Positions 742-35,955 of a stretch of DNA of 64,000 bases are shown in pieces (the first letter of the stretch is position 1; each line of letters begins with the position of its first letter). The notes below the pieces were generated by a model. That model did not search any database. It was not told the origin of the DNA and saw only the letters and a list, made by a program, of their open reading frames with translations. This stretch comes from Ylistrum balloti (lineage: Eukaryota). Location: positions 124,001 to 188,000 of the forward strand of contig NW_026781926.1 in NCBI RefSeq assembly GCF_031769215.1, read 5' to 3'. The translations under genes were made by a program, and so were the position numbers.

Positions 742-3700
742 TCATAAGTACAAACTGGCAGCAAATACAATATCCCTCTTTATACTCCTTATAGCTGTTA
801 ATAGAACACAACCAAGAATTATTTTCGAAATATCCACTTCAAGAAAATTATATTTTGATGACAAATTTTGAAATGGACAAAAGAAAATTTACAGATATGT
901 GATCTCCTGCAACATTCACCTTTGTATTAGGTTTGTTGTGAGAGAGAAACTTTTGACTGTATTTTCTAACTAACCAAAGAGTTGACATTTGTAAGCTAAC
1001 ACTGATCAGTAAGATAGCACATCAAGTTCTAGGTAACGAAACCTCTGTCATTGAAACAGATGATTTTCTTGGTCAAACTGATAAAGAATATAAACATAAT
1101 GGCTGCATTTCTACAGTGCTTACATTCTGCAAATTTGTTCTCCAGTTCTGTGTTTCCGATGGCTTTGGCAGCTTGGCACATCTGTCTGAGTGTTTCCTCC
1201 AGTCGCCTCATACATCGGATTATACTGCCTACAAGTTATATCAATCATATACAGAAAAGTTTATTATAATGATATGGTAGGCTTGAGGTTATCTGCTTAC
1301 ATTGCTAGGTTAAAGTCTATTTAGTTTTGTAGCTGAAGTTTACCTAGTTATCCGGGCTGATTTAAGTGTCTAGTTGTATTGGTAGGTTCAAAACAATCTT
1401 GTTGAGAGTCTTTATGAAGCTGGCTTCAGCTTTTTTCTTAATGTCATTGTTTTCAAATGGTTATTTTTTTTTTTTAATTAGATCCAGGATCCAGTCAATT
1501 TTTCAGTACAATCCACTACTTGTCCAGTAATTATGTATTATAGTGAGGATATATACAAACAACAGAAATAAGAAAAGGCACCTAAGTACAAGACAATATT
1601 GGTATGTTAGCCTGTTTGGTTTATTACAGGATAAAGACACTGAGGTGGCCAGCTATTTTCCTTGTCCTGTAACAAGCCCACACCCTCACTCTGCATCAGA
1701 AGTAGTGTTTGTACCCTAGGCTCATTGCAGGATCAATATCATCAAAATTTATCCATATATGTTTTTTTGACTTCCTCCCTTTCCCTTTCCTGTACAAAGT
1801 ATATGCATAGCTGGAAACATCGAACACATCATTCATAAAACGATCGAAACATTAAACACCATCTTCATAAAAGGTTGTCCATATCTCACCTTCAAAAATG
1901 TCTGACATTTTACAGATCTCTGCAAAGGTTGCTCCATTGCACCAAGCATTGACAATATCCATCATATGTGGTTTGAATGAATCTGCATACTGTTCTTCAT
2001 CAATATCAATCTTTGCTTCCCGACTGACCCGCGCAATCCTCCGTGCTGTGTCCTGATCAAATTACACCAAATATTACATTACACTTATTCTTCTGATATT
2101 ATTTGATGCTTAAAGAATAATTTAAAGACAAATATCTCAAACCTTGGCAATATTTTCCTACAGAAAATTTGAAGTTTAGAACATCCATGAAATGGACCTG
2201 GGTTTGAACCGGAACTTAAAGCCATGGGCTAAATTCCAAAGTACATTTTCAATGAAAAATAAAAAATAAGCACACATCTATCATGGGTACTGTTCATTAA
2301 CTTCAGTGCAAGGGTATGAAATCACTCATAACAGGATATTTCCGTGATCTGGACAGGTCATCACAAGCTATTTATAACATGAATTGTATCATCTACATAA
2401 CCTGGACAAGCCTTGATGCAGAGAGGACCTAACAAAGCTATTTCTGGCTATATCACAATACCAGCATGTTCCATGGAATGCTCTGACCAAACCATTTCTA
2501 ACCTGACTTGTGTTACCTGCATGATTCGGAGAGGTCCTGATAAAGCCTCAGTCAGTTTAGGCATCTCACTGGATTTTTCTTGAAACACAAAACAGCTCAT
2601 GAGTGCACATGTCTGCTGGGTTGTCAGATCGTTGAACACGCCGTTAAAAAGAAGTTCTGTCAGCAGCAACTCATCCCCACTGAAACAGTTATATATACAT
2701 ATACAAACAGGATCCAATATAAAATACCACACATAAATAATCAACCTGTAACCATGGAAACTCTTTATTTCAAAATCTAGGAATTCAAAACTTTAAGTCA
2801 AATTTAAACCATATGACTATATATAGCAAAACTTCAACCATGAAATCTATAACTTAAGGTGGTGTGTGGTGTGTTTTTTACCTGCTGATCTCACAAGCCA
2901 CCCTTCCTTTAAGTTCTATGACATCGGAGGCAGTACAGTAACCAAGGCGCCGCAAGACCCGCTTGCGGCACTTCAATTCATCCATCTGTAGAAGTGACTT
3001 CTTTTTCTTAAGCTCTAACTTAATGGCTTTTACTTCATTACCCACCTGTAATTTTGAAAATAACTTTTGTTATACAAGTTTATGTTGAAGTTCAAGAGTT
3101 AGGTCTCTATAGAACTTACTATAAATAAAGTATGAAAATCAGAAACACTCATGATATTTCAGAGAACATAGAATACAATGATAGCCCTATTCTACAGTTC
3201 CCTGGTTATGGCTGATCATCCAAAACTTAATCTGGGAACATGATATTCATTAGTATCATATTATACTACTACAAACTTTGAGTTTTAATATCCTCAGTGC
3301 GTTAACTCTTCTTAACCCTCCTCTTTTACAACTAGCAGTACTACATTCTACACATTACAACCTACCTTAGCTTTCTTCTCATACTCCTTGTAGTACTCCA
3401 AAAGGTTAGGATCTTTGTGAAGTGGATGTGAGTACATCCTATGCTCAAATGCTTCAATTTTCTGGAAAAGAAATGTGTTCATAAATTGTTTGAAATATAA
3501 TCATATAACATTTGGATTTTCTTTTTTTTTCATCATAAAGCAAACAATAAAAATCATCTATAACGAAAATATTTACATCTCAGAAACCATAAGGATCCTT
3601 ACATCACCAAGGGAGGTAATTCTGTGACTAACCTTGACTATTTCTTTGAGACCTTTCTCCTTGATTCCCATATCCTCTACAGGGTCAAGTAGAGGTATTC

Positions 3701-6700
3701 CATCTGGGAACCGCCTCTCCACTTCCTGGAGAGACTTGGATACACTCTGTCTGTTGTCAGTTGGACGAAGGTCCTGTGGGATGTACAGTCTTACAGCACT
3801 GACTGACTGGATCAGACTGGTGAGGACCGGTACAACCTGGATAAAGGAAACTAGCCCTCATAAAACTACATAAAACACTCTATATCACAAAAAGCCTTAT
3901 GTTTGATTTGTTTATTCAAAAATATATAGTTACTGGGATATCCATTTTAACTGGAAAACCAAGCATCAGACCAATCTTCACCAATCTCATACCACTCAAA
4001 ATACTGACAGTCGTAGGGGAATGTGTGAAGGAGATATGGCAAAAACAGAGTGAAACAGACAGTTGTATTGTATGGTTAAAAGTTGTTGGTAGTTGTACAG
4101 GTATAAGACTGAAAAAGTACATCCACAAAACATTTGTTCCTACCTGCATTTCACCACGCACGCCTTGCGGACAGGCTTGTATGGAGGTTATGTTACGTGC
4201 TCGTGCACTCTCCTTTGTCAGGTTCAGTAAGACCTCTGCTACATAGACTGGATCGGATGCCTCAACTGACTAAATACATAATGCAACATCATATATATCT
4301 CAATAGAATCACTTGCAAATTGATAAAATATGTCCCAGTTGTCTCCAGATTAACACAGAGAATACAATAATTTACCTGCATTGACCTTTTTTCAGTAAAG
4401 ACTAATACTAGAAAACAAAATACATTAAGTCCTGATACCATGTAAGCATAGTTTTAGTCTTAAAATCCCAATTTGTTTCAATTGTCTATTGTATCCTCTT
4501 CTCTAGAAAAAAGCTGAGCTGTCAGAGGCATTTAATAGCATGACAGTGAAGTATAGAATTTAGCAATCAAGGGTAATTATGTAACATGCCACAAGCCTGT
4601 ATCATACAGGTTTAAGAAATTCTGTTTTACAATGACATTCTTAGAAGGTTCTGTTTGTAAATTATTCATATTCATGGAAAGTAAGTGAAATCAATGAAAT
4701 TTCTTTCCATCTGAGACAGATTTATTTAATTTACTGAGAAAATATTCAACATAACTTAAGTAAGACATCACAATTCCAATATATTTCAAAATTTGTATGT
4801 TACTTGATAAATACAATATCTGTTTTTTTACACTTTACACTTAATTTTGTTGTTTTACAAAGATAGACTTACCTTCTTCTGATTTGACTTCTTCTGTAGG
4901 TTGACAAGTACTCCCCAGCCAAAGTCATCTTCTCCATTTTTTACCTAGAAAACAGAAGTAAACTGAAGCACACAGGAGATTTTCTACTTCATACACAGTG
5001 TACATGACACTACTTTCCTTCATGACATTTAATAGCAGAAATGCAAAAAATGTCTGTTTATCTTTGTTATATCTTATTTTGGCCCTGCTTGGTTGTAAGA
5101 AGGACAGTTGGTAGTGAGAAGAGAGTTACCTTGACAACACTGCCTGGTTGTAGGAAGGACAGTGGGTAGTGGGTACAGTGTTACCTTGACAATACTGCCT
5201 GATTGTAGGAAGGACACTACGTAGTGGGTACAGTGTTACCTTGACAATACTGCCTGATTGTAGGAAGGACACTACGTAGTGGGTACAGTGTTATCTTGAC
5301 AACACTGCCTGGTTGTAGGAAGGACAGATGGTAGTGAGAAGAGAGTTACCTTGACAACACTGCCTGGTTGTAGGAAAGATGGGTATGTAACAGAGGTCAT
5401 AATTAATTTCAATGCTTCCGCTAGGAATCAAACCCATGACCCCTGGCTTACTAGTCTGACACTCAACCAATCGAGCTATAGAGAAGTTCTCTCTGGCCGA
5501 GTGGTATATTGCGGCTAGTACATACTCTCCCTCCAGGAAATAACTCATCCTCGAGTTTCCAGGGGTTACAGCGATGCAGGTGGGGCATGGCTAAGTACTA
5601 TTGCCCAGTCCCTACATGGGCGCCAATGTAACAGAGGTCATTATTTATTTCAATGCCTCCTCTAGGAATCGAACCCGGGACCACTGGCTTACTAGTCTGA
5701 TGCTCAACCTATCGAGCTAAAGAGAAGTTCTCTCCAGCCAAGTGGTATATTGCAGCTAGTATTTTACCAGTGTTACAGGTAGAGAGTTACCTTGACGATC
5801 GTACCTGTCTGTAAGAAGGACCAAAGCTGGTGGGAAAAGAGTTACCTTGGCAACCTTGCCCGATTGTAAAATGAACATTAGGCAGTGCGTATCAATTGAC
5901 ATTAATGACCCTGCCTGGTTGTAAAATGAGCATTAGATAGCAGGTATAGATTTACCTTGATGACCCTGCCTGGTTGTAAAAAGGGCAGCAGATACTGTGG
6001 CTTCTGTATGTACTGTAGAAGCTCCTTTCCAAGATTGTCTAATTGTTGTCGTATTTTATAGTAAGGTCCAACCTGTTCTTCATTTGGAACATGAACATTA
6101 GCATATTCATCCTCCACCTTCTTCAATTCTGAAAAAGTTAACCATTTCATCTCAATGAATTTTTTTTGTTTTATTTTCCTCTGATGAAACTTGTATGTTT
6201 GATAACAAAAACAATGCTGCCAACCTGTTCTCTGTAAAATACTGAGTCAATGCCTGAAAGTAGCCAACAAGTACTTCCTTCAGCTTACACATTAGTTTGA
6301 GCCATTTCGTTTGAGAAGATTTCTGAATCTGAACAAAAATTGAAATGTTTGGATCTCTTTTGATTTTGAATTTTAAATTTCATTAAAAAACCATTAGTTT
6401 TCCTCCAAATTAATAAGACATGAGGTAGAGCTGTATACAGAATACTTGATTTTAGCCTTCTTTTTTTGGTCAGTTCCTTTTTACTTACGCTCACACAATT
6501 CAGGAATAGCAGCATAGTTCTGAAACTGGTAGAAGGAGCGCTCCAACATGTACTCCGGATTAATTTCTTCCACTCGTAAAAGGTTTAGCACCATGTTGTA
6601 GGTCAAATGAAAAGCAGAGTTCAGAGAGTCAGCCTCACCCTGTATAAGAATAAGTAATAGATAATATGTTATTTTCGTTACATTTTTTTTTACAAAATAA

Positions 6701-9700
6701 TTCATTTTGATTCAATTGAATATGTAGTTTTCATCAAAATCTGTCCTATTTTCATCAGTTATCAGTTACCTTGACAACAGTCTTGCCAACTTGAGGGCTC
6801 ATCTTTTCATCCACCATCAAAATTACAATTCCACGGTCGTCAAGACCTCTTCGTCCTGCTCGACCACTCATCTGTATGTACTCTCCTGATGTTAGCTAAA
6901 ACAGCAGGTTAATTATAAAATTTCATTTTAATATAAAACTTTAAAATCAAGTACCAAACTTCCTCAATCCACAATTAAAAACTCAGTATCATATTAGTAC
7001 TATCCTCCTTATCCTTCAATTCACCAGCCTAACATCCTACTACTACACCACAGAACCCCTATATTCACCTGCCCAACATCCTACTACTACAACACTGTGC
7101 CACTATATTAACCAGCCTAACATCCTACTACTACACCACAGTACCCCTATATTTCCCACCTAACATCCTACTGCTACACCTCTGTGTCCCTAATTCACCA
7201 GCCTAACATCCTGCTACTACACCACAGTACCCCTATATTTCCCACCTAACATCCTACTACTACACCTCTGTGTCCCTATATTCACCTGCTAACATCCTAC
7301 TACTACACCGTGTCCCTATATTCACCAGCCTAACATCCTACTACTACACCACTGTGTCCCTATATTCACCAGCCTAACATCCTACTACTACACCACTGTG
7401 CCCCTATATTCACCAGCCTAACATCCTAATACTACACCACTGTGCCCCTATATTCACCAGTCTAACATCCTACTACTACACTACAGTACCCCTATATTCA
7501 CCAGCCTAACATCCTACTACTACAACACCGTGCCTCTAAATACTGTACAGCTGGTTATTTTGGTGTGAATGATATTTTTTCCAATTCCATAGGATATTAA
7601 CATTATCACAAAACTTTGAACCATGAAATAATAAGACACAAGTACATTATATTTGTTATCAAATATCATTAATATGATGAAAAATCACAGACATTTCAAA
7701 CTATCAAAGAATAATTAAAATAATAATGGTCCAGAACATTACTTATACAGGTTATATGTTACACGATATAGAATTTTGCATTAAAAGCAGAAATTACTAT
7801 CATTATTATTTATCATAACTGGGGTGTCGATAAATAATATTCACAAAAAGTAATTATACTCTTTTATCCAGATTGCACAATTCCTATTCGTTAAAATTTT
7901 ATTCTCCTTTTCATGCTATTCAGTATTTAATACTTTCTCACAGTATCCAGGAAGTAAATATTTTATATTACAATGCAGTACACAAAGATCTGTAGCCTGA
8001 AGTACATAGAATCAATAACTGCCAACACCTTATGACCATGATACATACCCATCGAAAATCTTTCCCGTCAAATTTCCTAGCACTAGTGAACAATACTGTC
8101 CTGGCAGGCATGTTAAGTCCCATAGCAAAAGTCTCTGTAGCAAACAGTGCCTGAAACAAGAACAAGTCAACTTATCATATTAATTATATCTTTATTTACA
8201 TCTAAGATGTTACAAAATACAATAATGACATCACATTGATGATCTCTATCCATGTTAGTATGACTGATGTTTAACGTATATAAAATCAATAGGCCTTTCT
8301 AGATCCTGTTATGAATTGAAACAGAAACTTAAATGGACTTTTATGACTGTACGCACAATTGTCTGAGATAATTTAGACAGATTTTTTTTGTTTCATTACT
8401 TAGCATACATTACTACTTGATCAGATGTCAAGTGATTAATCCCATTTCAATTTAAAAAATTGTAAAACAACTTCCTTAACTACTCATTTTCATGAGTTTT
8501 GTCTCACAAAACCTTTGAGTCTGTTATTTTTCACAAAACAGACTATGCTGTTACACCATCTTCTATATTTATTGGCCCTATCTGATAGGTGACAATTTTT
8601 CTTCATGAATTTGCACACAGAAGAAAGTTGGTTTATCACACTGTAAACAGATTTCATTGACTTAACAATCAACAAGATTGAGCAAAACACATATAAAGCC
8701 TATACATATAAGCTCTCTCAATCGGCAGGTCAAATACTTCAAAAGTGTCAATTTTGTCAGGGACAGGGAGGGATAGGATGGTGTGAGACGGGGCAAGAAG
8801 GATGGGACTGGAGAGACGGGACACGACAGATATACAGATAACCAGCACCAAACATCCCGGTGATAGAAAGATTATAAAACAAGAAAAATCCTTCAAATGT
8901 GTTGAGGTGAATTATATTATGAATGAAATGAAGGACAGATATTATGACAAAACCCAAAGTTACCTTAATGAGTCCTTCAGAGAACAGGATCTCTATAGTT
9001 TCCTTAAGAAGGGGCAGTAGACCAGAATGATGGATACCAACTCCTTTCCTCAAGAGTGGCAGGACATGTTCCACCTACAAGTCACAGTTTAGAGAGAACA
9101 ATTATTCATCAAACACATATTGAAAGATTCAGCAACGATTCAACTTTTAATCTTACATATCTTACAGATTTATACTTCATCAACTTCATCATCTGATGTT
9201 GCTAGAAACTTTTCCTAATTGCCAATTATACTCTTAAAATGAATTCTATTCAAATAACATTCATATTTTACAGTTTTTAATTAATCATCTTCAAAATTCT
9301 GATGTTACTAGAATTTGTTGACCTACTCTACAATTAAAATGAAGTCTGATAGAAGAGTTCTAATTTATAAATTAACATGGCTTAGTTCTAATTTATCATA
9401 ACATAAATGTACTGTTAATGTTCTTATTCTACCACATTATCACTTTTTGGCAAATAAGCATAATTGTGAATTCCCACAACCATGATGTTTGCTATTTAAA
9501 TGCAACAAGTGCTATCATTTTTTAGTGCAATAATTAAATGAAATTATCACTAAGATATGTACACTTATAAGAAAAAAAAATTTACCTGTGGAAGTTTTTT
9601 GTCTTCATCAGATAAGTTATCTATTGCATTGTTGAAAACCTCTTCTACTAAGGACTTTTCTTCCTCTGAAATACAAATATTCAACAGTTAAGATACATGA

Positions 9701-12700
9701 AAACATTACTAACAATTCAATAATTAGAACGTATGTGAGAATGTAAATATGGCTGCCAAACCTTTTTCTAGAGGACAGCAATATCAAACAATGTATTTTA
9801 CTATCATTTAGATAGCTATTTTGATAAAGTTCGCTTTTCTGCAGATGGAATTAAACTCACGAAAAATAGAAATTTTGCGAATAAAATTATTAAAAGAATT
9901 CATATTATTTTATAATTTCCATAATTTTTCATCTTTTCTGTTTAAAGTTTTTGGTAAAACCGCAAAAATTTGCCCTATCAATAAAAACATTACATCAGTG
10001 TACTCTCACAATATGCTGAAAATAAGGAACCAACAATTATTACAAAAGTTTACAAAAGAATCATGTATCACCCGTGTATTGTGTGCCAGAAACATATGTA
10101 TATATGTAGATTGTAATTAGTTGGCATTACCAAAATAATTTATCAATTTGGTTACACTTTAATCATATGTACATCTGATGTAAATTGTAGCGGAAAATTA
10201 GATATAATACAAACTAACCAACAAATTACTTAAAAACCAGAACTAAAGAAAGCTATGAAAATACTCAATCATGCAAAAAAATCAAAGTAATTGATTTAAA
10301 ATCTCATTCTTTTACCTTTATTTTGTTCATATCTTAGAAAACATATGTTATTGTAAAATGCCCTACTTTATTTTCCTTGTATCTAAGAAAACATATATAA
10401 GAAGTGGTAACTAGAGGGGTTTACCTGAGTTAAAGTCTAGCTTGGCCATCTGCATGGCATAAGCCTCACAATCCTTTTTACTAAAACTAAACACTATCAC
10501 AGGGGCAAAGCTTCGCTCCATAATCATCTTCACAATCTTGAAGCAGTTTGTTTCATTTCCTGAAAATAAAGACTAGATAGTTATATCCTACTGAGAATGC
10601 AATCTTCACAACTTTGTTGGTATTGCTTGATGAATTTGCATCATATGTCAAATGTGACCTCTGACCCTTTAACCTTGACCATTGACTACCTTGATGTTTA
10701 AGTTTTAGAAATTCATGTAATGACATTTTGTACAAATATAAACCAAATCTCAAAATACGGCACTCATTCTGGACAGGAAGGCACAGGACATGATGAACAA
10801 GACATGGATAACACTATAAGCCCTACCCCTGTAAAAGTAAACATGAACACCACCATTTCCATCTGACAACACCCATCTTTTACCTTTTGCTCCACCTCGT
10901 CTTCCCCACTTATCACCCTTAGACGCATCACCTGCATCCCGTAAAACAGACATGGCTGTGTTGAAGTTCTCTTCTCGAAATTCACCCTAAAAATGAATCA
11001 TTCATGAAATATTTGTGACAAGCATACATGTGACCTATGACCTTTTCTAAGACAACATTCATTATACAGCCATTAATTAACTCATTCAGACAGATTTCCT
11101 TTCTCATTTATCTGTGTATCGATTACTAACAACTTATTCTGTTATCTTCAATACTTTCTGTTTACCATCATTTTTAAGAATCAAACCAACAGTGATTCAT
11201 AACATCAGCAATAATAGGTAAGGTAAGAGAAATAGGCAATGTAAGATATAAGTTATCGAGGCACAAATCCTCAGAAATTAATTTTCCTTGATCCAAACTT
11301 GGAGCTGACTCACATCCTTTGCATACTTACATTTTCATCCACAACAAGGTGAATGCCATCCCCACCAGATGGAAATATGTAGTGTTGTAGAGGGGTTGGT
11401 CTGTAATCTGTGTACACAACATGACAAGGCTGAAACAAAACAAATGATAGACTTAGAATCAGCATGATTCAATTTTTCTTTACTGAACTTTAAATGTTAT
11501 GCTTTGGCTGCATTTAGCTTTAAATATATTTAAAAAAAGTTACTGGAAAGTTGTTTTTTAAAACTATGAAATATGAAGAACACATTAACATCATTGTTAA
11601 ATACTTATATCATTTATAATTATGAAATATAAATCTTAACTGGAGTTACATCTCCTGTTTTACTTTTATTGTACATGTATTTGTTTCATTGTTGCTTTAC
11701 ATCCTATCAACAGCCAGAGTCATTTAATGACAGGTCAGGTTTGGGCAGTGGAGGAAAGAAGAAGTTCCCAGAGAAGAGCCAGCTACCTGCAGCCAATACC
11801 TGGCACATGCCCTATGTAGACCTCGAACCCAGAGGTAGAGGGTGAGTGATAATGACTGTAAGATGCTCTACTTAGCCACTGCAGCCCTCCTTTTGTTATA
11901 ACTAATGATATTCGAATCTTTCACAACATTTATCAAGTCTTAGTGTCTAGTAACATGTTTCTAGGTCTACACATTGTTGTTTCATTAATTTAGGGTGTGT
12001 TAGTGTAATTAATGTGAATATTCTGGACAGATCTTCGCCACATTATTCTAGGAACCGCCATTAACTAAACATTTCTACATTCAAGCACATTAAACTTTAT
12101 CCATGTGGCATTAATCCTCTACCACAGTAGGTTACTTTGAACACAATTCAATTTCTGCAGGTTATAGGTCAACAATATTTGTTTCAAAGAAGCCATATGA
12201 CAGTTAATAGGCCCTGGTATGTGAAATTCAATTATATTGTCATATACAGTGAGGTTAGGATGTCAGCGTATATAGAATGGCTCCCATTACCAGCTCAGTT
12301 GCATACTTCACAGGTATTTCCCATCTTGTCAGATCAAAGCTGTAATACATTTGTGGCTACAGGTCAGAATGATCTCAATTACCTGTTTATGTAAATGGCA
12401 GATCCATTCAGCAAACTGGCGTGCATTGGGGATGGTGGCCGATAAGAACACATAATGGACATTATCAGGAAGCAGGATGATTGTCTCCTCCCAGACCACG
12501 CCCCTTTCTGGTAAAGCATAAAGGAATTAAAATTCTAATGCACAGCAACATATTAAATGTCAGGTACTACGAGCAGAATGGCAAGACTAGCGTCAGACAC
12601 TGAATGATTTCATGTGAAATTACTGCCTTCTATCATTTTATGTTGATGTTTCAGAATTTAAATCAACAGTTAAAATATGCACTGAATTTCAATAGAATTT

Positions 12701-35861: not shown

Positions 35862-35955
35862 ATTTATAGCAATACCTTCGCTAGGATTCGAACTCGATGT
35901 CCCTGGCTTATTAGTGTGACGCTCAATCGATCCTGCTAAAAGAAACGTTCCCCAG
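35862..35955 (-). mobile_element. Diverged fragment of the same tRNA-derived LTR family
   Basis: CGCTAGGATTCGAACTCGATGTCCCTGGCTTATTAGTGTGACGCTCAATCGATCCTGCTAAAAGAAACGTTC aligns by eye to LTR 5411-5490. Confidence 0.65.

Follow-up and report, generated by a model that had tools for sequence, protein, structure and literature searches.

On the minus strand of the stretch analysed here (the window, 64,000 nucleotides of Ylistrum balloti contig NW_026781926.1), positions 5386-5777 are very probably an old, decayed insertion of a 406-bp non-autonomous retrotransposon of the Helenus/TRIMp3 group, which carries long terminal repeats (LTRs), lies within one of the introns of an MTR4-like helicase gene and would have been mobilised by elements of the Gypsy type. 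An earlier note on this DNA had described the segment as a terminal-repeat retrotransposon in miniature (TRIM), and all of the details that it listed were found there. New in our analysis are two intact Ty3/Gypsy families with the same primer and one composite locus in which Gypsy and Helenus parts are interleaved.

Architecture of the window copy

Read along the minus strand, the copy covers 392 bp, against 406 bp in intact copies, and opens with a 151-bp 5' LTR (5627..5777; TGTAAC...GTTACA, the TG...CA ends that had been noted), to whose bases 1-151 other copies align. A single T (5626) separates this LTR from an 18-nt primer-binding site (PBS), TGGCGCCCATGTAGGGAC, at 5608..5625, which is the spacing claimed for it. 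The internal part (5523..5626), 104 bp with that T included, agrees in length and at both ends with that of 20 other copies, and closes on a polypurine tract, GGAGGGAGAGTA, at 5523..5534 (GGAGGGGGAGTA in most other copies), likewise as claimed directly before the second LTR. The 3' LTR (5386..5522) is 137 bp long and lacks 14 nt behind its first TGTA; the 3' LTRs of other copies measure 150-152 bp. The paired repeats, put at about 88% identity, were recovered as two 136-nt segments (5385-5520 and 5626-5761) with 88% identity, and the GGTA target-site duplication lies, in plus-strand reading, at 5778..5781 on the upstream side of the minus-strand element and at 5382..5385 on its downstream side.

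Within the 5' LTR, a tRNA-derived module occupies 5654..5726 and includes the A-box region (5719..5708) and a B box, GGTTCGATTCC (5675..5665); in the 3' LTR the B box has decayed to GGTTTGATTCC (5434..5424). The module's loop, CTAGTAA, occurs in both LTRs. The AATAAA reported for the 5' LTR stands near its end (5644..5649), is also present in other copies and could serve as a polyadenylation signal for RNA polymerase II (Pol II). Open reading frames (ORFs) in the element are short only, in keeping with the view that it has no coding capacity; the window element is a decayed old copy of a 406-bp non-coding element.

Copies elsewhere in the genome

The window's own genome (648.5 Mb) was searched for further copies, and 40 of 2390 first-look candidates were scored; dozens of these were near full-length matches with 86-89% identity and identical first and last bases. 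The 21 two-LTR copies examined measured 405-407 bp in total (LTRs 150-152 bp long, internal part about 104 bp), and 20 of them were bordered by perfect 4-bp duplications of unrelated sequence (TGTA, ATGG, CAGG, AACA, CGTA and others), the remaining one differing at a single base. With the window copy and three longer arrays described below, perfect duplications were present in 24 of 25 elements, which answers the proposal that they be sought at multiple loci. LTR-to-LTR identity was 93-100% in other copies, two of them at 100%, compared with 88% in the window copy. A 34-nt pattern across the LTR end, PBS and leader was found at 133 places in the genome with at most 3 mismatches, compared with 0 for the reversed control, so it does not arise by chance.

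These copies also bear on the 3' LTR, for which the earlier note had left two options, 137 bp with a 14-nt deletion or 185 bp starting at a second LTR-start-like TGTAACCCCTGG (5570..5559). Alignment of the 3' LTR to the 5' LTR begins, in other copies, at base 1 of the latter, and TGTAACCCCTGG lies inside the internal part in every copy examined and in published scallop relatives; the TGTTACCCCTGG motif falls within the internal part of the published scallop families as well. The 185-bp option was rejected on these grounds, and we regard the boundary as settled in favour of the 137-bp LTR with its 14-nt deletion.

Older Helenus subfamilies, about 80% identical and with the same PBS followed by other leaders (GGGACTCGAGA..., GGGACTCTGGAA...), were also seen (L043 5692-5954, G000:C113; L049, L050 and L056), so several related Helenus lineages are present in this genome.

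The primer tRNA

When the genome was scanned for a T-arm and, after it, the PBS complement, 11 exact genes were recovered, all in tRNA gene clusters and typed by ARAGORN as tRNA-Lys(ttt). The host tRNA-Lys(TTT) gene ends in ...GTCCCTACATGGGCG, and with CCA added this end is complementary to the PBS at 18 of 18 positions; host tRNA-Lys(UUU) is the predicted primer and matches the PBS perfectly. The earlier note had named the right tRNA, although the 14/18 match that it gave was too low. In a figure of Kojima 2024 (PMC10886601) the same PBS group is assigned, with a gap, to Aplysia tRNA-Lys-CTT, whereas the host tRNA-Lys-TTT fits 18/18 and gap-free. Clusters of tRNA genes (L032-L040; G000:C336, C448, C1175) combine Lys-ttt, Gln-ctg, Gln-ttg and Arg-tct at spacings of a few kb, and a truncated Lys-ttt remnant was seen in L031.

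Relationship to published elements

TRIMs whose LTRs contain sequence derived from a tRNA, including those of scallops, were named Helenus by Kojima 2024 (PMC10886601) and were joined with Cassandra and Ajax in a proposed class, TRIMp3; 51 Helenus families were reported from pteriomorph bivalves, all with 4-bp duplications (PMC10886601), which bears out the link that the earlier note had made between Helenus and tRNA-like LTRs with 4-bp duplications in animals. The window element has two short direct LTRs (151 and 137 bp) in a non-coding unit of a few hundred bp, tRNA-like sequence of the box A (TRGCY...YGG) and box B (GGTTC) type in each LTR, with one box broken in each, a tRNA-complementary PBS one base beyond the 5' LTR, a polypurine tract directly before the 3' LTR, the animal-type 4-bp duplication, and sequence similarity to published families.

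That similarity was assessed by text matches in DataS1, by eye, and by the dimensions in Table S1. By text match, 13-15-mers of the element were found in Helenus-1_PeMa, Helenus-1_MiYe, Helenus-3_MiYe and Helenus-2_ArIr, and reading by eye showed agreement over long stretches; the PBS term was matched by Helenus-1_PeMa and Helenus-2_ArIr, and the LTR start by Helenus-1_PeMa and Helenus-3_MiYe. The scallop families (Pecten maximus, Mizuhopecten yessoensis and Argopecten irradians) have the same architecture and 4-bp duplication, and their PBS, ttggcgccca(t/c)gtaggga, is common to the element. The LTR start tgtaaccctggtaaa is held in common with Helenus-3_MiYe and Helenus-1_PeMa, and the anticodon-loop region gactagtaagcca with these two and Helenus-1_MiYe. 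By eye, Helenus-1_PeMa has an almost identical internal 3' end, ...ctgttacccctggaaactcgaggacgagtt.tttcctggagggggagta, with nearly all of the last 48 internal bases in common with the element, and the element's LTR tail resembles that of Helenus-1_MiYe. Each published scallop family nevertheless differs from the element in its LTR tail and mid-internal sequence, and the dimensions 151/104/406 (LTR, internal part, total) are matched by no family in Table S1, where PeMa-1 is 159/105/423, MiYe-1 151/115/417, MiYe-3 159/107/425 and ArIr-2 160/105/425.

The element is accordingly assigned to Helenus/TRIMp3, with its closest published relatives in three scallops. Because none of the Table S1 families has its dimensions, its family is taken as a sister of the published scallop families and as none of those listed; the suggestion of an undescribed family holds at this level but not for the group, a kind already published in 2024 with close scallop relatives.

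Cassandra of plants and Ajax of nemerteans are also miniature LTR elements whose LTRs carry the relic of a small-RNA gene with an internal Pol III (RNA polymerase III) promoter, but they have a 5S relic and 5-bp duplications where the window element has a tRNA relic and 4-bp duplications; moreover, an LTR-borne Pol III terminator and documented transcripts are known for Cassandra, and the element has neither. Ordinary TRIMs (TRIMp2) and zebrafish LTR-11_DR share the short LTR-PBS-polypurine tract-LTR plan and mobilisation in trans, and LTR-11_DR also forms tandem arrays with LTRs in common; ordinary TRIMs, however, lack a small-RNA relic, and LTR-11_DR uses a tRNA-His primer and has a 43-bp internal part.

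Proposed mechanism and candidate helpers

In the mechanism that we propose, RNA would start in the 5' LTR, read through to the 3' LTR, and be packaged by Gag-Pol that an autonomous Ty3/Gypsy element supplies. Reverse transcription would be primed by tRNA-Lys(UUU) and the second strand at the purine tract, after which the Gypsy integrase would insert the element and produce the 4-bp duplication. The tRNA relic probably provides the internal A and B boxes from which Pol III would make the Helenus RNA, and the likely helpers are two Gypsy families of the same genome that use the same primer. Gypsy helpers for Helenus had been proposed from PBS similarity alone (PMC10886601), and an autonomous Gypsy element with LTR termini and PBS in common was among the checks suggested for the present copy.

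Exact PBS sequences not followed by the Helenus leader were found at 41 places in the genome, and several of these were retrieved. The first Gypsy family (C569/C1371) has intact ORFs of 381 aa (a PNMA-like Gag) and 1461 aa (protease, reverse transcriptase, RNase H and integrase). Its LTR ends in ...CCTGTTACA, followed by T and the PBS, so that 28 of 28 bases are identical to Helenus across the LTR end, spacer and PBS; its purine tract is GGGAGGAGTA and its LTR starts with TGTAGC. The second family (L052-L054) has 893-bp LTRs with 99.3% identity, the same PBS and an ATAT/ATAT duplication, and 13 of its bases, AGGGGGAGTATGT, at the purine tract and LTR start are identical to Helenus. Two intact Ty3/Gypsy families of this genome thus share the predicted primer of the element, and are its likely helpers.

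A hairpin with an AGGA loop, which Kojima 2024 (PMC10886601) does not mention, precedes the purine tract by 8-12 nt in Helenus and in both Gypsy families, with stems that differ: AACTCG/CGAGTT in Helenus, GAAATGATG/CATCATTTT and TGACG/CGTCA in the two Gypsy families (regions L009:1654-1757, L054:1255-1311 and L055:8845-8906, all minus strand). In the window copy it reads AACTCG-AGGA-TGAGTT (5542..5557, minus strand), with one G-U pair. Only this local hairpin recurs; whole-region RNA folds of the internal part were no better than shuffles (z 0.97 and -0.51). By eye, a purine-loop hairpin was seen at a similar place in several other published bivalve Helenus internal parts.

The composite locus on C40 (L058, G000:C40:88000-97999, about 2001-10000, and L059) has the order Gypsy LTR, PBS, Helenus internal part, Helenus LTR, PBS, Gypsy internal part, Gypsy LTR. 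It is a diverged member of the first Gypsy family, in which the Helenus internal part and LTR stand behind the 5' LTR and ahead of the copy's own PBS. Identity between the outer LTRs is 97.5%, TATA/TATA flanks the locus within a TA repeat, and a 1-kb insertion (3066-4084) interrupts the Helenus LTR. This order would result from two template switches between co-packaged RNAs at the PBS that they have in common, and recombination between DNA copies could give it too. The composite, the 28-base identity and the hairpin may together record template switching between Helenus and Gypsy RNAs in one particle, a reading that we hold tentatively and with slightly less than even confidence. If it is true, the C40 composite would be the first direct indication of which autonomous element helps an animal Helenus, and that helper would recognise only short signals at the termini and near the PBS and purine tract. 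A genome-wide junction pattern for further chimeras of Gypsy LTR and Helenus internal part returned ordinary Helenus copies only.

Two other candidates were set aside. In a chimera on C240 (L042 4272-4561 and 6018 onward), 139 nt from the leader of a degenerate LTR element follow a Helenus LTR and its PBS; that element starts 1.5 kb downstream, has LTRs of about 321 bp and an integrase remnant, and is unconvincing as a helper. A genome search for its leader gave just the two neighbouring copies. A 5.5-kb tandem unit with the same PBS at C854/C35 was rejected for want of a long ORF. This unit (L041 and L048, G000:C854; L044, G000:C35) carries the tRNA-Lys(UUU) PBS (GGTGTGACATT-TGGCGCC...), has a longest ORF of 221-232 aa with no Pfam match, and may be a large non-autonomous LTR derivative.

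The tRNA relic and transcription

Scanned with Rfam (E up to 10), positions 4800-6400 gave an end-to-end alignment of the tRNA model with 5726..5654 and no 5S ribosomal RNA match, 5S-derived LTR sequence being the mark of Cassandra and Ajax. Among four host tRNAs compared, the LTR modules were closest to tRNA-Lys(TTT) (49-53 of 73 positions identical, 7-10 standard deviations above shuffles); the 5' LTR module of the window copy (5654..5726) reached 53/73, about 10 standard deviations above shuffles. These results uphold a tRNA-derived module with A and B boxes, and the CTAGTAA loop, which had been likened to that of tRNA-Thr(AGT), equals the loop of host tRNA-Thr(AGT). Among 58 LTRs, TRGCY-N4-YGG is retained in 51 and GGTTCGANNCC in 43. 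No sense-strand run of four or more T residues was present in 29 of 30 copies, a weakly informative absence given that roughly one is expected by chance per 406 bases; read-through by Pol III is possible because of it, and both box retention and the scarcity of T-runs are compatible with Pol III read-through of the element. The Pol III promoter that the earlier note had placed in the LTRs is, then, present as motifs, from which promoter activity is predicted. Pol III transcription of Helenus was left unvalidated in Kojima 2024 (PMC10886601), and no later literature on a Helenus helper or on Helenus transcription turned up.

The same TRIM might instead carry its tRNA relic passively and obtain its template RNA from Pol II, by way of an LTR promoter and polyadenylation at the LTR AATAAA or else by read-through from a host gene, as ordinary TRIMs do. 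We consider this possible although improbable, and it is a live alternative because AATAAA stands about 20 nt before the LTR end, in the window copy and many others, and because the B box is non-canonical in a very young copy; the absence of a Pol III terminator from the element and the sense orientation of the window copy within its intron also speak for it. Set against these are the retention of A and B box motifs in most LTRs and across scallop species, the short and T-run-free build of the element, as in Pol III templates, and the report (as cited in PMC10886601) that Cassandra, the 5S analogue, is transcribed from its own Pol III promoter.

Our preferred reading of a Gypsy-mobilised, Pol III-transcribed Helenus element has several points to its discredit. 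The Rfam alignment scored 21.5 bits, under the gathering score of 29. With ARAGORN, neither the window nor eight other copies gave a tRNA call, for which reason the module is taken for a relic and not a gene; it is clearly tRNA-derived but not a working tRNA. The motifs are what suggests Pol III transcription from this relic, and the youngest copy examined (L009, with identical LTRs) has GAGTTCGATTCC where a canonical B box would stand; a Pol III terminator is missing from the LTR, and the AATAAA in many copies fits Pol II equally well. GGTA recurs in the 55-bp minisatellite around the insertion, so the duplication of the window copy proves little by itself and the other copies carry the point. 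The window copy is very likely dead, since both boxes are broken, one in each LTR (the A box in the 5' LTR and the B box in the 3' LTR), and 14 nt of the 3' LTR are gone. The helper link, finally, is suggested by short stretches in common and a single composite locus, which DNA recombination could also explain.

Readings without an LTR element

Each repeat has a tRNA-like module with A and B boxes, and loci with three repeats occur, as would be expected if the unit were a dimer of tRNA-derived short interspersed elements (SINEs) mobilised by a long interspersed element (LINE). SINE2 elements likewise have a tRNA-derived head, are short and non-coding, and reach high copy number, but they have no LTRs, PBS or purine tract, end in a LINE-recognised tail and make variable duplications, none of which fits the present element. 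Its units are paired and tailless (no A-rich tail was found in any copy cut out with flanks, nor a simple-repeat tail), the TG...CA ends are invariant, the spacer between repeats is a constant 104 bp, the duplication is a constant 4 bp in 24 of 25 elements, and the perfect 18-nt tRNA-Lys PBS and the purine tract lie exactly at the LTR junctions. A SINE dimer is therefore very improbable and, in our view, refuted by the layout, the duplications and the primer match. Because other copies have paired LTRs, the PBS and constant 4-bp duplications, and do not behave as the tandem SINEs that the earlier note had named as its refutation, the element is identified as an LTR-type mobile element.

Still less credible is the view that a unit of about 255 bp was duplicated locally in tandem, or is a satellite, and never retrotransposed: three LTR-internal-LTR-internal-LTR arrays of 662-668 bp do show a 255-bp period, but they are themselves flanked by 4-bp duplications (TAAT, TTGG, TATA), and the other copies, scattered over many contigs, are separate two-LTR units with unique flanking sequence and with target duplications, which refutes it. 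A miniature inverted-repeat transposable element was rejected on the LTR, PBS and purine-tract layout and the constant 4-bp duplications.

Genomic setting

The insertion lies inside the 55-bp minisatellite, which spans 5085-5376 and 5838-5981. Minus-strand ORFs on both flanks of the minisatellite match the Pfam MTR4-like_stalk, so the element is placed in a predicted intron of an MTR4-like helicase gene, in the same orientation as the gene. On the minus strand, the minisatellite units repeat the end of an MTR4-like exon and a GTAA donor-like site (FLQPG..VKV, then GTAAC), and the exon itself is at about 5990-6150. Elsewhere in the window, a 78-nt stretch at 35862-35938 has 75.6% identity to the tRNA-like part of the LTR and probably represents either a further repeat of tRNA origin or the remains of an old LTR.

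Significance

Miniature LTR elements bearing small-RNA sequences were named only in 2024, and two questions about them are of interest, namely the Pol III role of the relic and the identity of the autonomous mover. The window copy, being dead, adds nothing to these by itself, but the family looks recently active, with some copies that have identical LTRs, a perfect primer match, and intact Gypsy candidates that share its terminal signals. With these features, and with two such candidates intact, this genome is well suited to settle both the Pol III and the helper question. Elements of this kind also inflate tRNA gene predictions, and need to be masked in the annotation of bivalve genomes.

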